Shown: positions 2,267 through 42,924 of the stretch, in pieces
Position numbering within the stretch: the stretch's first letter is position 1
How the letters are laid out: every line of letters starts with the position of its first letter
Made by a program: the position numbers and the translations under genes
Notes under the pieces: model-generated
Told to the model about the DNA's origin: nothing
What the model saw: only the letters and a program-made list of their open reading frames with translations
Databases searched by the model: none
Sequence record: MW760841.1
Length of the DNA: 64,000 nucleotides
Strand: one strand, 5' to 3'

Positions 2267-3100
2267 ATGAGAAAGGTTCTGATTGGTTTATTCGCTGCGC
2301 TGAGCTTCTCAGCGATGGCAGGGCAGGATGTTGTCATTACCACTGGGCAACAAGGACTGACGTACAACTCAGTCTACGGCACCAACCTGGCAGGGGCGCT
2401 GAATGAGTTCGGCAATACTGCACGCGTTATCCCTTCGAAGGGGTCTTCGGACAACCTCGATAAAGTTTCCAGCGGTGAAGCCCAACTTGGGTTCACGCAA
2501 GCTGATGCCTTCCAGTATTGGCGTCAGCAACATCCGAACGAAGCACAGAAGGTTGACATCGTTGGTCAGCTGGGACGTGAATGCGTTTGGGTAGCCGTCA
2601 AGAAAGGCGGTAAGATTAGCGAAGCCAAAGACCTGACCAACGGCGCGAAGATTGCCGTCGGTGACCCGGACTCTGGTTCCTACGCCAGCTGGCAATACCT
2701 CCAGCTTTTGGTAAAAGAATACTCGAAAGCGGAAACCTACGCGAAGGGTGGCATTCGTTCTCTGTCCAAAGTGGCGACAGGGGAATACGATGCGTTCCTG
2801 TGGGTATCGGCTCCGGGCAAAAGTAATAAATTCCTCGATGCCGTCAATCAAGACAGTTCTGGCTTGGAACTGATTGACATGAGCACTTGGAGCGTTAACG
2901 ACAAACTGCCTAACGGCCAGTCTGTTTACACCAAAGAGAAAGTAGAGACCAACTCTGCGGCATTCTTCGGTGCGAAGGTTGACGTCCCATGCACCACTAC
3001 GCTGGTTGTGGCTAACACAGACGCGGGTGACGACATGCTCGAAACGGTATCGTCTATCCTCCTCAAGAACACTTCTCGTGTGATGGGGACGAAACAATAA
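2267..3100 (+). CDS. TAXI-family TRAP solute-binding protein (secreted)
   Basis: Signal peptide MRKVLIGLFAALSFSAMA; ITTGQQGLTY, SKGSSDNL, LGFTQAD and VGDPDSGS motifs typical of TAXI receptors. Confidence 0.8.
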   Translation: MRKVLIGLFAALSFSAMAGQDVVITTGQQGLTYNSVYGTNLAGALNEFGNTARVIPSKGSSDNLDKVSSGEAQLGFTQADAFQYWRQQHPNEAQKVDIVGQLGRECVWVAVKKGGKISEAKDLTNGAKIAVGDPDSGSYASWQYLQLLVKEYSKAETYAKGGIRSLSKVATGEYDAFLWVSAPGKSNKFLDAVNQDSSGLELIDMSTWSVNDKLPNGQSVYTKEKVETNSAAFFGAKVDVPCTTTLVVANTDAGDDMLETVSSILLKNTSRVMGTKQ

Positions 3101-3868
3101 CTGGCTGAGGGTTGATTCTGACCCACGACCTGTACCAACCTACTTGAACGGGCTGGTATCCCGTTTGATGCGGTAATAGCAGAGACCCAGTGCACACCCG
3201 TAAGTCGCTGGTAGCCGGTTACACAAAGCACTATCCGTTAGGGTAGGTAACTGACCGTACATGAACTTACTCGATGAGAGAGCCCTTATATATGCAAGGA
3301 CTTAGAGAGTTGGTGCGTGGGCTCATTCGTTCCATACGGGACATCTGGGCTTTCGCTCGACATTGGTCACTTGCTCATTACTGGCTTACAGGCGGTGGGA
3401 AGTCCCGTGAGGGTTCCCGATACAGACATCTTCCTGCGTGGAATTATATGTCCTTATCGGACAGGCCAGCACCGGACCGCTAACCCGACCTGCTAACGCC
3501 TGTAATACTACAATCTGATGTCCATTAATGGGATTAAGTTCCCAGTGTGATAGAGCGACTGTGTGTCGCTGGAGATAACCCCCCGTCGTGGACTAGGTTA
3601 TCCCAAAGGTAATGTGAAAGCGGGTGGTGCTTGGAGAGGTTCAGACCGGGGGATACTCTGGCTCAACCGAAGAAGTCCATCACCCGCATTCTCACTTCAA
3701 AAGTCCTTTTACAGATTTATCCCTATATATGCGAAAGATAACAAAGCGAATTCTAACGAATGAGTTTTCTTTGTTATATGTCGGGGAATCTCGTTGTTGC
3801 TGCACAGGGCGTTGCGTTGCGTACGCTTGCCGGTGTGTAGGAGTTGCGAGGTGCCCTGGCACCTATAC
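3101..3868 (+). ncRNA. Candidate large structured non-coding RNA (unassigned)
   Basis: No convincing ORF; nested long-range helices (e.g. 3339-3345/3517-3523, 3386-3394/3497-3505, 3620-3629/3678-3687) and a GTGA tetraloop; strand and ends are inferred. Confidence 0.55.
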
Positions 3869-3950
3869 GGGGGAGTGGCGGAGCGGTCGAACGCGGCAGA
3901 CTGTAAATCTGTTATCCCACACGGTGGTTCAAATCCATCCTCCCCCACCA
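3869..3950 (+). tRNA. tRNA-Tyr(GTA)
   Basis: Acceptor GGGGGAG/CTCCCCC, loop CTGTAAA, CCA; short 10-nt variable region. Confidence 0.9.
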
Positions 3951-4370: not shown

Positions 4371-4494
4371 GTCACGAGAACGTAACCCTGCGGTTTGGTT
4401 AGTCACCTATACTAGCGGTTACGCGATGCCCTTATCTGCGGGGTGTGATATAGTGCGAGGGGTAGACTCTCTCAAGCAAGCAGACGCAAATTCT

Positions 4495-4570: not shown

Positions 4571-4576
4571 AATTAG

Positions 4577-4740
4577 CAGGAGAGCTTTAGGGGTTCGTTT
4601 TCAGACGCCTAGGTTGTGGAACGTTGCATCCCGCGTCAAGCCGGATGTAATTGGGGTTCGACTCCCCACTAGGATGCCCTAAAGGTAGCGCCGTCACAGG
4701 CGAGCAACTAACACGAGGCGTCATTACACGCCTACTCCTG
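4577..4740 (+). ncRNA. Candidate ~165-nt ncRNA with an embedded tRNA-like domain
   Basis: Outer helices 4577-4582/4735-4740 and 4585-4592/4677-4684; perfect T-arm 4652-4668; two extra hairpins. Confidence 0.6.
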
Positions 4741-4749
4741 AATAACTGT

Positions 4750-4992: not shown

Positions 4993-5101
4993 AACAATGA
5001 ACGTGGCCTTCCCAACGTAATTGCACATGAGCCCGAGGGCAACACTGTCTTTGCAAGTAAGAATCAGTCCTGCCTTTGATGGCGAGCGTTCACCCTACAA
5101 T

Positions 5102-5167
5102 GGTTTCTCCCGGTCGGTCCGGGGTCGTCCGTAATAGACGAGGTTGGTTCAAATCCAGCAGAAACAA
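5102..5167 (+). ncRNA. Compact tRNA-like cloverleaf with a non-canonical anticodon loop and no CCA
   Basis: GTTTCT/AGAAAC, CCCGG/CCGGG, TCGTC/GACGA, T-arm GTTGG-TTCAAAT-CCAGC. Confidence 0.55.
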
Positions 5168-5267
5168 GAACGATGAAGTTAGAGGCATAAACACCCGACT
5201 CATAATCGGATAGTGGTTTACCCGGCGGGTACTCCTTCGCAGGTTCGAATCCTGCCTTCGTTCGCCC
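5168..5267 (+). tRNA. Atypical tRNA-like gene with CAT loop, 28-nt variable region and no encoded CCA
   Basis: Acceptor GAACGATG/CTTCGTTC (one T.T mismatch), loop CTCATAA, T-arm GCAGG-TTCGAAT-CCTGC, ends GCCC. Confidence 0.55.
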
Positions 5268-40778: not shown

Positions 40779-41633
40779 ATGGAAAACTTGTATGACGATT
40801 ACGCTGACGTATTAGGAAAGGTTCGTCAGGAAGTACGCTTAGCACCAATCCTCGACTTGGTGAGCCTGGGAATCGATTACGGCTACGACACGACACTCGC
40901 GGACATTTATTACCAGCCGCTTCCCGAGTCGAACGATGAATGTATTCGCCTGGAAGGAATCATTGTCAGAGTGGCAATGGCCTTAGGGCAACGCCTGGGG
41001 GTTGGCTTCAATCCGCAGGAAGTCTTTAAGAAGCCCAAGGAGACGGTACGTGTCCTCCACGGCCTCCTGGAGAGCTTTGACGAGTTCGAAGACAAAGATG
41101 CACTGTTTGGCATCATGTGCTCTGGCGAGCCGCCACAGTTCATTCTGGAGAACATGGCACGCCATGTCTACGGGGATAACGAACTGCACTTCGAAGATTT
41201 GATTGTGGTGGTGGAACCACGCCTGTTAAACGCCCTGCGCAACATCTTTGCCGCGCAAGCAGCGGAAGACGCGAAGGAAGGGGACACGAACCCACGGATG
41301 GAGCGCATCATTCCGTATCTGCGCCATTACCCGGCCAACCCATCGGCGTTCGTCTTCATGAACCTGCCTGCGGTGGTTGACCTGAACGCGGTCGTGCAGT
41401 CGCTGGACTTTAGCGAAGAGAACGGGGTCTCGGAGATTGACCTGCTGGTCATGTACGCGGTGGGGCTGTCGATTATCGGCCCAGCCGACTATCAAACCGC
41501 CTACGGTCAGCTGGAAGAGAACCTGGCACTGATTAACAACGAAGACCTACCGGAAGGCCCTATCCTGAAAGATGCAATGGAAGGTCTGAAAGCAGTCTAT
41601 GGTGAGGAGCAAGAGAATCATGACGAAGATTGA
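40779..41633 (+). CDS. Conserved hypothetical protein (possibly virion)
   Basis: 284-aa ORF. Confidence 0.75.
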   Translation: MENLYDDYADVLGKVRQEVRLAPILDLVSLGIDYGYDTTLADIYYQPLPESNDECIRLEGIIVRVAMALGQRLGVGFNPQEVFKKPKETVRVLHGLLESFDEFEDKDALFGIMCSGEPPQFILENMARHVYGDNELHFEDLIVVVEPRLLNALRNIFAAQAAEDAKEGDTNPRMERIIPYLRHYPANPSAFVFMNLPAVVDLNAVVQSLDFSEENGVSEIDLLVMYAVGLSIIGPADYQTAYGQLEENLALINNEDLPEGPILKDAMEGLKAVYGEEQENHDED

Positions 41634-42924
41634 GTACCTGTATGCTGCCTGTAAGTCCGGGGCCTGGAAGCGCCTGGTGTGGCGCATGGGTATCTTTAAC
41701 GTCTGTATCTTCCCGGAAGACGGCGAAGGGCCAGTGTCGTACGACCTGACGTTTATCGATGGCATGCCGCACTACTGGGTCGCCTCTGACGATGACAGTC
41801 CGGCGGAATGGGTGGCTATCTCCGACGGGAAGAAAGATGAAGAGCTGTTCTTCCCGGAAACGGTTATCCCGCTGCCGAAAGTCGAATACCCTGGTCTGGA
41901 AGAAGACATCACCACCACAGCGGGGCGTTATGTCCTGAACTGGATTACCATCTACTACGCGTTCGGCACCCGCTTACCGTATCTGCGGGAAAAAGACCCG
42001 ATGTCTTACGCCAAGGTGATGTATGAACGTTGCCTGGATAATGAAGAAGACAATCCGGAAGACGAAGACGCCATTCGCCCAAGCATGGTAGCACGCTTTG
42101 TAAACGGCCTCAGCGAGTTAGCGCCGATGGCTAAGGCAATCTCCCCAACTGGGACGTTGCGCTCGTTCACGGTGCACCCAGACGCGTATAAGCTGCGTGA
42201 TGCGTTACTGCTCAAGCACAAAGACGAACTGGACAACCCGGCGGTCATTGCGATGATTGAAAAGGCGTTGGATGAGCTGGATACCGAATGGTTATCCGGT
42301 GACCAGTCCATTCAGTTCTACGCCTCGAAGAAAGCGCGTATGCGTCGTCGTAAGCTGATGCTGTTCTACGGAATCGAGTCTTCGTTCCACGAAGGGACCG
42401 ACTACACCTTAATCCCAACCGCGTTAGTGGAAGTGGATAAGGCGGGGATGGAAAACCTGGTGGCGAAATACAACTCCATCCGTGACGGTTCGTTCTCGCG
42501 TGGTGCGGAAACCGCGAAAGGTGGGGAACAGGTACGTATCATCCAGATGATTTTCCAGAACCACCGAATCGTCGAAGGGGATTGCGGCACCAAGATTACC
42601 CATGCGGTGTTAGTGACCGATGCCAACGCGGGTCGTTACATCGGTATGAACGCCATGGTGGACGGTAAACCGAAGATGATTACCACCGACTGGATTAACA
42701 GCCAGAAGGGCAAAATCATCCGACTGCGCCGCCCCATCTTATGTCAATTGAAGCATATCGACTGTTGTGCGACCTGTGCTTCGCAAGATAAAGCGAAAGA
42801 ACCCCGCGCAATCGCCGCAGATATCTCCACCGCGTTCTCGAACGTCATGGGTGTGGCGATGGCGAAGATGCACGGCTCCGAAAACATTGTGCGGGAATTC
42901 AAACCGCTACAACACATTACCTAA
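41620..42924 (+). CDS. Virion RNAP beta' C-terminal-type subunit (phiKZ gp80-like)
   Basis: RGAETAKGG, EGDCGT and LC...CCATC Zn motif. Confidence 0.8.
   Translation: MTKIEYLYAACKSGAWKRLVWRMGIFNVCIFPEDGEGPVSYDLTFIDGMPHYWVASDDDSPAEWVAISDGKKDEELFFPETVIPLPKVEYPGLEEDITTTAGRYVLNWITIYYAFGTRLPYLREKDPMSYAKVMYERCLDNEEDNPEDEDAIRPSMVARFVNGLSELAPMAKAISPTGTLRSFTVHPDAYKLRDALLLKHKDELDNPAVIAMIEKALDELDTEWLSGDQSIQFYASKKARMRRRKLMLFYGIESSFHEGTDYTLIPTALVEVDKAGMENLVAKYNSIRDGSFSRGAETAKGGEQVRIIQMIFQNHRIVEGDCGTKITHAVLVTDANAGRYIGMNAMVDGKPKMITTDWINSQKGKIIRLRRPILCQLKHIDCCATCASQDKAKEPRAIAADISTAFSNVMGVAMAKMHGSENIVREFKPLQHIT

Follow-up and report, generated by a model that had tools for sequence, protein, structure and literature searches.

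Introduction

Large ornate RNAs are rare, and each of those found so far, namely, RNase P, group I and group II introns, OLE, GOLLD, and ROOL, has revealed new RNA biology. The tRNA cluster of phage T4 is co-transcribed with two stable RNAs, species 1 and 2 (rnaC/rnaD), which are approximately 120 to 140 nucleotides (nt) long and contain no open reading frame (ORF). Another group, the dual-function and structured small-protein RNAs, is exemplified by Staphylococcus aureus RNAIII/hld, SgrS/SgrT, SR1/SR1P, and the hok mRNA. For ROOL and GOLLD, cryo-electron microscopy (cryo-EM) revealed RNA-only multimeric assemblies, according to a preprint (bioRxiv 10.1101/2024.12.08.627333). Here, we report on the 768 nt between positions 3101 and 3868 of a 64,000-nt window from sequence record MW760841.1 of the Erwinia phage pEa_SNUABM_4, which contain a structured RNA with an internal small ORF.

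The phage is a member of Machinavirus, one of the genera of the nucleus-forming family Chimalliviridae, and the window is identical, at the same coordinates, to pEa_SNUABM_4/8 (MW812338, 249 kb). A preliminary description of the 768 nt had proposed a large, ornate RNA structure at the head of the main tRNA block, and our analysis confirmed that such a structure is present and conserved. We propose that the core of the stretch is a new structured RNA of approximately 555 nt which is also the mRNA of a protein of 55 to 64 amino acids (aa), in other words, a dual-function RNA, and we give this interpretation an even chance of being correct.

Results

A structured RNA restricted to four genera of jumbo phages

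Searches with blastn retrieved the region in 45 to 63 phage records, all of them from SPN3US-like phages of Erwinia, Salmonella, Escherichia, and Proteus. A profile hidden Markov model (nhmmer) yielded a full-length match of approximately 555 nt in every homologue, corresponding to positions 3144 to 3695 of the window, and it is this segment, not the whole of 3101 to 3868, that constitutes the conserved element. The flagged 768 nt are a composite of three parts, the core (3144 to 3695), a spacer (3696 to 3783), and a hairpin leader (3784 to 3868); the last approximately 170 nt, which the preliminary description had included in an RNA of about 750 nt, are a separate spacer and tRNA leader. The 5′ flank (3101 to 3143) is alignable among the closest relatives only.

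The element occurs in the genera Machinavirus, Seoulvirus, Erskinevirus, and Wellingtonvirus, i.e., in 4 of the 33 taxa that are listed immediately below Chimalliviridae. The RNA family is confined to these four genera and is not general to nucleus-forming phages, as had been supposed, because a Maaswegvirus, which also belongs to the Chimalliviridae, carries the equivalent locus of a TAXI gene and tRNAs without the element. In the Klebsiella Maaswegvirus FBKp24, to which a synteny search with the TAXI protein led, the TAXI gene is followed directly by the tRNAs, and neither nhmmer --max nor a covariance model of the 5′ domain (R1) found a homologue of the element at that locus. Scans with degenerate patterns (two of IMG/VR, one of metagenomes, and one of GTDB genomes), followed by nhmmer --max, returned the same phage group only; the matches in unrelated bacteria and archaea covered just the short search pattern. 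Similarly, blastn hops from SPN3US and Wellington led to no further genera. At an E value of ≤10, a search of the window and eight homologous loci against Rfam 15 found nothing in the element, the only hits being tRNAs and sub-threshold tRNA look-alikes. Literature searches returned neither a description of this RNA nor a transcriptome, Ribo-seq, or proteome data set that covers the locus. The core belongs to a previously undescribed RNA family of SPN3US-like jumbo phages.

Folding and covariation of the plus strand

The plus strand of the 768 nt folded at -284 kcal/mol, better than dinucleotide shuffles, with a z-score of -5.24 (0 of 20 shuffles reached the observed value), and the reverse strand had a z-score of -1.51. 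When the stretch was divided and each segment compared with 200 shuffles, the z-scores were -1.15 for 3144-3259, -3.64 for 3292-3385, -3.32 for 3386-3505, -3.31 for 3524-3607, -3.85 for 3608-3695, -3.43 for 3696-3783, and -2.59 for 3784-3868, so that six of the seven sub-segments fell between -2.6 and -3.9.

Covariation, another check proposed in the preliminary description, was strong. In a MAFFT-based alignment of 21 nonredundant homologues, RNAalifold predicted 74 pairs, and in 34 of them at least one sequence had changed both sides while keeping the pair. We then restricted the model to the 72 pairs of those helices that are alignable across all four genera. In this curated model, 95.4% of the cells pair, compared with 30 to 46% when the 3′ partners were slid by one to three columns; 34 of the 72 pairs changed on both sides (7 to 10 after sliding), and the covariation score was 0.389 (0.05 to 0.08 after sliding). 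None of 500 shuffles reached the observed value in four of the five measures, and 8 of 500 did so for the fifth, further pair types. The R1 model found exactly one copy of the 5′ domain per genome, at positions 3141-3264 of the window with 123 bits. On the alignment fitted to R1, 97.2% of the cells of the 5′ domain pair (33 to 44% after sliding) and 23 of its 33 pairs changed on both sides (6 to 12 after sliding), values that 0 of 500 shuffles reached for four of the five measures and 2 of 500 for the fifth. It should be noted that this alignment was fitted to the structure and hence favors it; the MAFFT-based counts agree.

The core is a real structured RNA of the plus strand, and its structural domains P1-P4, P5, P6-P10, and P12-P15 have been maintained by compensatory evolution. 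Covariation supports helices P1-P4, P7, P13, and P15, and helices P6, P10, P10a, and P12 are invariant, so that they lie beyond the reach of covariation. Apart from the local helices, a genome-wide scan for stacked covarying column pairs revealed no convincing long-range helix or pseudoknot, and a candidate pseudoknot joining the P1 loop to the 5′ flank did not outperform shuffled flanks.

A constraint on the DNA rather than the RNA (an origin, a packaging site, or protein-binding repeats), a decayed gene, or a composition artifact would fit the position of the region near the conventional start of deposited genomes and the clustering of TATATG, four of whose seven plus-strand copies in the 64 kb lie here. 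However, pairing has been preserved by way of G-U intermediates and of compensatory changes, on one strand only, and the minus strand folds like shuffled sequence; therefore, the constraint acts on plus-strand RNA and not on DNA. No pseudogene-like protein similarity was seen beyond the small ORF, and we regard these explanations as effectively excluded.

Architecture of the element

The features of the 768 nt are listed in Table 1. Every helix that the preliminary description listed can be found where it was placed, and several of them are supported by the comparison of 21 homologues: the GNRA hairpin (P7) is retained among the homologues, the 10-bp helix 3620-29/3678-87 of P15 shows strong compensatory changes, and TTACAGGCG/CGCCTGTAA (P6) and GATAACC (P14) are lineage limited. 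Four others, TGTAC 3131/3257, ACCTAC 3138/3243, GAGCCC 3280/3319, and GGACATC 3339/3517, are not conserved, and the first two of these compete for bases of the covariation-supported P2 and P4/P4a.

Table 1. Features of positions 3101 to 3868 and their basis
Feature	Coordinates	Strand	Basis or remark
5′ flank	3101-3143	+	After stop of TAXI/NMT1-like coding sequence (CDS) (3100); outside conserved element; weak hairpin 3109-3124
5′ domain (P1-P4)	3144-3258	+	Covariance model, covariation
P1 hairpin, 7-nt YUGRURU loop	3144-3152/3160-3168	+	5′ domain model
P2, closes junction holding P3o, P3, and P4	3170-74/3254-58	+	Covariation
P3o; P3 with 13-nt conserved loop	3179-80/3214-15; 3187-92/3206-11	+	5′ domain model
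P4, invariant internal loop ACACAAAG; P4a	3216-22/3247-53; 3231-34/3243-46	+	5′ domain model
Linker with Shine-Dalgarno (SD)-like purine run GAUGAGAGAG	3259-3291	+	Upstream sequences of 21 ORFs
Small ORF, 63 codons plus UAA	3292-3483	+	Open frame in 21/21, substitution pattern
P5, long hairpin from N-terminal half of ORF; AUG at foot	3294-3374	+	Folding z-score
Central multihelix domain P6-P10a	3386-3505	+	Folding z-score -3.32; P7 compensatory changes
P6	3386-94/3497-3505	+	Encloses P7, P8, P9, P10, P10a
P7, GNRA hairpin	3397-3401/3414-18; 3404-06/3411-13	+	GUGA loop, compensatory changes
P8; P9	3431-34/3440-43; 3450-53/3459-62	+	Central domain
P10; P10a	3468-70/3492-94; 3473-75/3485-87	+	ORF stop UAA 3481-83 in P10a loop
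Invariant single strand ACAAUCUGA (3510-18), P12, P13, variable P14	3506-3607	+	P13 covariation
P12	3529-33/3540-44	+	Invariant stem, UUNRGU loop
P13	3554-59/3565-70	+	4/6 pairs changed on both sides
P14, variable hairpin module (GATAACC)	3574-80/3596-3602	+	At least 4 alternative forms
3′ domain, long irregular hairpin P15 plus tail AUUCUCAC	3608-3695	+	Folding z-score -3.85, covariation
P15 segments	3620-32/3673-87; 3640-41/3665-66; 3643-44/3662-63; 3646-50/3657-61	+	3′ domain
Spacer outside core: TATATATGC (3724-32), hairpin 3738-46/3769-77, TATATG 3775-80	3696-3783	+	Motif comparison
Hairpin leader immediately 5′ of tRNA-Tyr	3784-3868	+	Minimum free energy (MFE) -37 kcal/mol, z-score -2.59

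P5 folds with an MFE of -34.7 kcal/mol and a z-score of -3.64. An equivalent long hairpin is present in 13 representatives of all clades, with z-scores of -2.1 to -4.3 in 11 of the 13, and its sequences are unalignable between clades. The central domain is arranged differently in Erskine- and Wellingtonviruses than in Machina- and Seoulviruses: the P6 helix is invariant in the latter two genera and replaced by another arrangement in the former two. Within this domain, the P7 loop reads GUGA, GUAA, or GCAA among the homologues, and the inner stem changes from CCC/GGG to CUC/GAG.

In the 3′ part, the main stem of P15 (13 pairs) is 97.8% paired, with five pairs changed on both sides, and its internal loops, GGUGCUUGGAG ... 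GAAGAAGUCCAUCA, are almost invariant; in Wellington, the outer stem is entirely rewritten and the pairing is kept. The GATAACC form of P14 is limited to the pEa_SNUABM_4 lineage, and its relatives carry one of three other modules. Single members of different clades, namely, pSal04, UViG_3300011862, Seoulviruses, Asesino, and UViG_3300011741, share one near-identical form (GGCGCGGUACCUCAUACGGCCGGUACGCC), and the sister phages of these carriers have other forms. This scattered distribution suggests that the P14 module may be exchanged by recombination between co-infecting phages. The long invariant unpaired motifs (ACACAAAG, ACAAUCUGA, GGUGCUUGGAG, and GAAGAAGUCCAUCA), the retained GNRA hairpin, the optional inserted hairpins, and the swapped P14 module are all traits of stand-alone RNAs.

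A small ORF threaded through the helices

The preliminary description had considered the stretch to be noncoding and devoid of a credible ORF. However, a small ORF in the center of the element (Table 1) is conserved in frame in every homologue, and its first half has a coding substitution signature. A conserved small ORF that explained the region had been named as an outcome that would argue against a large RNA; such an ORF does exist, but it covers approximately 190 of the 555 nt and leaves the flanking domains unexplained. In pEa_SNUABM_4, it encodes 63 aa, or 69 aa if translation starts at the ATG at position 3274 (3274..3483 in the ORF list), which is also present in ChrisDB. The homologous ORFs have 55 to 64 codons, with the AUG at the same structural position and the same UAA in the loop of P10a; the frame opens at the base of P5, passes through the central domain, and ends in that loop. 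P5 spans the N-terminal half of the ORF, and therefore the start codon is located at the foot of a very stable helix. In most lineages, the SD-like run GAUGAGAGAG (AGGUGA in relatives) precedes the AUG by 5 to 12 nt; in SN29 and SPAsTU, the distance is shorter. A small hairpin that covers the SD, judged by hand, is only weakly conserved.

To characterize the selection on this frame, we compared the ratios of nonsynonymous to synonymous changes (pN/pS) in eight independent sister pairs. In the N-terminal half (32 codons), pS was 0.45 and pN was 0.14, giving a pN/pS of 0.31, and the substitutions at codon positions 1, 2, and 3 numbered 45, 27, and 68, respectively. In the C-terminal half, pS was 0.09 and pN was 0.07, with a pN/pS of 0.82. 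Shifted-frame controls gave 0.91 and 1.68. Judging from these substitution patterns, the N-terminal approximately 32 residues are under purifying selection as protein and the C-terminal half is constrained at the nucleotide level, not at the protein level. For example, compensatory changes in P7 rewrite the C-terminal peptide from RAT to SVP in Machina.

The N-terminal helix of the product, approximately 32 aa long, carries the motif W.L..YW[LF][TS]G, and the tail is unconstrained as protein. AlphaFold2, run with a 13-sequence alignment, modeled a single helix over residues 2 to 33, with block means of the predicted local distance difference test (pLDDT) of 78 to 86 and a pLDDT of <50 at residues 36 to 55 and 57 to 59. 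The helix is predicted to be amphipathic and rich in Arg and Trp, and the tail is predicted to be disordered. No Pfam family matched the product, and a profile search of 5.8 billion proteins returned six clusters, all from these phages. It matches phrog_26199 (E value of 4e-7 for the window protein and 1e-49 for Machina gp9), a family built from annotated ORFs of the same phages that is silent on RNA. The GenBank record contains no annotation between 3100 and 3869, and the ORF is thus left unannotated in pEa_SNUABM_4. The ChrisDB record places two short "hypothetical proteins" over the region (locus coordinates 1397-1640), of which gp9 is the conserved small ORF.

These data bear on the possibility that the element is a purely noncoding ornate RNA, for instance a scaffold, a sponge, a ribozyme, or a self-assembling particle similar to ROOL/GOLLD, whose ORF is not usefully translated. 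Nearly every base lies in a helix or a conserved loop, the AUG is placed at the foot of the stable P5, the C-terminal half evolves like RNA, with compensatory helix changes rewriting the peptide, and both the conserved stop codon and a "QAP" motif are embedded in RNA-conserved sequence. Yet there is no in-frame stop in any of the 21 homologues even though their N-terminal halves are unalignable, compared with totals of 55 and 46 stops in the other two frames (two to three each). The low pN/pS of the N-terminal half, with substitutions most frequent at codon position 3 and least frequent at position 2 and with control values near or above 1, also speaks against this possibility, as do the positionally conserved AUG and SD-like motif. 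We consider a purely noncoding role unlikely.

Conversely, the locus might be an ordinary small-protein gene in which the protein is the sole effector and structured untranslated regions act in cis, through mRNA stability, protection from RNases or RNA-targeting defense, or translational control exerted by a factor that binds the 5′ domain. Such a gene would account for an ORF that evolutionary criteria show to be real and that the records of several relatives list as a hypothetical protein, and also for the operator- or riboswitch-like position of the 5′ domain directly upstream of the SD. It would not account for the fact that the protein-constrained part amounts to approximately 96 of the 555 nt and that the best-conserved parts lie outside it, mostly in the 5′ and 3′ domains, with long near-invariant unpaired motifs in the 215-nt 3′ domain. 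Moreover, the peripheral helices are inserted, extended, or swapped in the manner of stand-alone structured RNAs, and no riboswitch, T-box, or leader family matched. This explanation therefore appears doubtful to us, and we retain the dual-function RNA as the preferred one.

Genomic context, spacer, and tRNA leader

In the window, the stretch is bounded by a TAXI/NMT1-like solute-binding-protein gene (2267-3100; Pfam NMT1_3) and by tRNA-Tyr (3869-3950), which heads a block of ten tRNAs; ARAGORN placed tRNA-Trp and tRNA-Cys further upstream. In all homologues, the element is located on the tRNA strand and upstream of the tRNA array. The upstream neighbor varies, being the TAXI gene in the Erwinia genera and a different small gene in Seoulviruses. 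The Erwinia phage ChrisDB, unlike all other Erwinia relatives, lacks the TAXI gene, and its RNA element is intact. P15, the last helix, lies 7 to 13 nt before the start of the first tRNA in Asesino, phiEaH2, Wellington, and UViG_3300011741.

The ATAACAAAG hairpin reported at 3738-46/3769-77 is real and lies outside the conserved core. The neighboring TATATATGC precedes a ParB-like gene in relatives: Machina-type phages carry a ParB-like CDS of approximately 109 aa between the element and tRNA-Tyr, right after a TATATATGCGAAAG motif (Machina locus coordinates 2058-2390). In pEa_SNUABM_4, its nearest relatives, and Seoulviruses, there is no ParB-like CDS and a 40-nt hairpin is found instead, which looks like a lineage-specific insertion of the gene or its loss in pEa_SNUABM_4. 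The motif TAT(A)TGTCG is conserved in Machina- and Seoulvirus. The late promoters of phiKZ are TATG with G as +1 (PMC4666361), and by analogy, the TATG-type motifs at and near the element, located at 3291-94, 3728-31, and 3777-80, may be transcription start sites. TATATG occurs seven times on the plus strand and once on the minus strand of the window, versus approximately 15 per strand expected from length alone. The plus-strand copies start at 3289, 3445, 3726, 3775, 12040, 16758, and 55621, the first four of them at this locus within 500 nt; the sites elsewhere lie in ORFs or between convergent genes and are not obviously upstream of genes. We rejected TATATATGC as a general promoter motif, as only two exact copies exist in the 64 kb, both in this region and both among its four TATATG sites. 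No sigma-70 promoter was found on the plus strand, a single weak consensus match was present on the minus strand, and no intrinsic terminator was found.

The leader forms a long hairpin in every clade, with differing stem sequences and a conserved GGCACC a few bases before the tRNA. Its role may lie in the processing or the stability of the tRNA precursor.

One may ask whether the entire element is a cis-acting head of the tRNA-array precursor, a folded leader that aids processive transcription, processing, or export. It would then be akin to the put/EAR antiterminator RNAs or to lambda nut/N, and the Arg/Trp-rich helix would play the part of an N-like cofactor on the GNRA hairpin. The invariant position and strand relative to the tRNA array, the short distance between P15 and the first tRNA in Erskine- and Wellingtonviruses and UViG_3300011741, the conserved GNRA hairpins, and the dependence of the phiKZ tRNAs on the phage's own non-virion polymerase (PMC12571901) are all compatible with such a leader. 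Nevertheless, in Machina-type phages, a ParB-like gene and a TATG-type motif intervene between the RNA and the tRNAs, a related phage of the Chimalliviridae has the TAXI-tRNA arrangement without the RNA, and the element has no similarity to known antiterminator RNAs in Rfam and is far larger than any of them. We regard this explanation as highly improbable.

Several further features of the neighborhood were recorded. A TerB-like protein (1529-2017; Pfam TerB, E value of 6e-16) is encoded upstream of the RNA element, and the periplasmic-type TAXI/NMT1-like protein just upstream of the RNA was recognized with an E value of 1e-11; both genes are unusual for a lytic jumbo phage to carry. Klebsiella Maaswegvirus phages also have the TAXI gene, at approximately 63% identity. 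Within the tRNA array, Rfam scored a 95-nt tRNA at 5169-5263 (39 bits, above the gathering score) that is absent from the ARAGORN calls and from the GenBank record, as well as a weak tRNA-like match at 4606-4675 (mascRNA model, 24 bits). The array also contains unexplained gaps of 120 to 180 nt (4371-4494, 4571-4749, and 4993-5168). In FBKp24 (vB_KpM_FBKp24, MW394391, approximately positions 40920-41670), about 750 nt at the tail of the tRNA array are unannotated, fold with a z-score of -3.55, and contain T-arm-like motifs. This stretch is not homologous to the element and could represent decayed tRNAs or another structured RNA.

Discussion

If the dual-function interpretation is correct, the RNA would be transcribed on the tRNA strand and, in Erskine- and Wellingtonviruses, released by RNase P cleavage at the first tRNA. 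The stable folded RNA would accumulate, and its conserved unpaired motifs would bind a partner. P5 would keep translation low, and each passing ribosome would transiently unfold the central domain. The helical peptide would most likely act together with the RNA that encodes it, and the two would assemble in cis into an RNA-protein particle, for which roles in expression of the tRNA array or in host takeover are both conceivable.

Several points weigh against this model. Translation could be negligible, given the position of the AUG at the base of a -35 kcal/mol hairpin and the weak SD of the Seoulviruses, and the C-terminal half of the product shows no conservation at the protein level. The architecture of the central domain differs between the clade pairs, and its main helices are invariant and hence blind to covariation. 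The effective diversity is low, approximately eight to nine lineages from one narrow phage group. Machina- and Seoulviruses have a conserved TATG-type motif between the RNA and the tRNAs, and co-transcription is therefore not assured. Our observations concern structure, conservation, coding signature, and synteny, and it is from these that we infer transcript ends, RNA stability and abundance, translation of the ORF, binding of a partner, and the biological role; binding of the peptide to its own RNA is a proposal.

In its most far-reaching form, the model would make the element the RNA subunit of a new RNA-protein particle of this nucleus-forming phage lineage, in which a tertiary-folded RNA of 555 nt encodes, in its own helices, a helical peptide that assembles on it in cis. 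We consider this rather improbable. Such a particle would be catalytic, serve in assembly, or act as a decoy; it might, for instance, help to mature or export phage tRNAs or thwart an RNA-directed host defense. To our knowledge, no RNA class encodes its own cis-assembling helical peptide.

Regardless of the mechanism, the element occurs in cultivable, genetically tractable nucleus-forming jumbo phages of Salmonella, E. coli, and Erwinia, and its homologues are diverse enough for a testable secondary-structure model. A protein frame threaded through helices is unusual and places one sequence under constraints at both the RNA and the protein level. Should the RNA be abundant during infection, it would offer a handle on tRNA and RNA traffic or on host takeover by nucleus-forming phages. 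The locus is unannotated or misannotated in approximately 65 phage genomes and is missing from Rfam.

Comparison with known RNA families delimits the element further. The preliminary description had matched it to no RNase P RNA, transfer-messenger RNA (tmRNA), signal recognition particle RNA, or intron, and Rfam at an E value of ≤10 agrees, with GOLLD and ROOL included. For RNase P RNA, there was no hit to the bacterial, archaeal, or nuclear models at this threshold, circular permutation aside; the RNase P-like motifs GUGAAAG and GAAGAAGUCC appear out of order and lack conservation in Erskine- and Wellingtonviruses. Resemblances of conserved motifs to tmRNA and group I introns likewise failed on motif order, conservation across clades, and model hits. 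Group I and group II introns were rejected, since Rfam gave no hit and there is no split gene, as follows from the upstream gene differing between genera (TAXI versus SPN3US gp2). A riboswitch, T-box, or ribosomal protein-type leader upstream of the ORF likewise had no Rfam hit. tmRNA resembles the element in being a structured RNA among tRNA genes that contains an ORF, the stop codon of which is located in a hairpin loop. Neither ARAGORN nor Rfam detected a tmRNA, however, and nothing resembling the acceptor/T-arm domain of a tRNA was seen; the ORF, with 55 to 64 codons, possesses an AUG and an SD-like motif of its own. A hok-like type I toxin mRNA was also rejected: the product is a predicted amphipathic helix with a disordered charged tail, and on inspection it has no hydrophobic stretch of transmembrane length; no antisense partner is known, no search aimed at one having been made, and the minus strand folds like shuffled sequence. 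T4 species 1 and 2, compared by description only, are likewise non-tRNA RNAs in or beside the tRNA cluster of a lytic phage and are presumably released by tRNA-processing enzymes, but they are far shorter than the ORF-containing 555-nt element.

We know of no system with this architecture, and the closest in concept are ROOL/GOLLD and the dual-function RNAs. The covariance models of GOLLD and ROOL give no hit at an E value of ≤10 in 3101-3868 and eight relatives, and these RNAs differ in host range from the element, which belongs to enterobacterial Chimalliviridae, and have no ORF under purifying selection. On inspection, the element revealed no conserved palindromic loop. The element nonetheless shares several features with GOLLD and ROOL, which are 500 to 800 nt long, densely helical, furnished with conserved loops, and encoded by phages or prophages beside tRNA genes; in all homologues, the 555-nt core is a structured RNA of >500 nt beside phage tRNAs. 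Compared with the known dual-function RNAs, the element differs in that RNA helices, not protein selection, shape half of its ORF; in addition, it has no known base-pairing target, and its product has no predicted transmembrane segment. Like them, it combines a conserved fold of several hundred nucleotides with an internal short ORF, it shows covariation both outside and across an ORF that is kept by protein selection in its N-terminal half only, and its start codon is occluded as in the hok mRNA.

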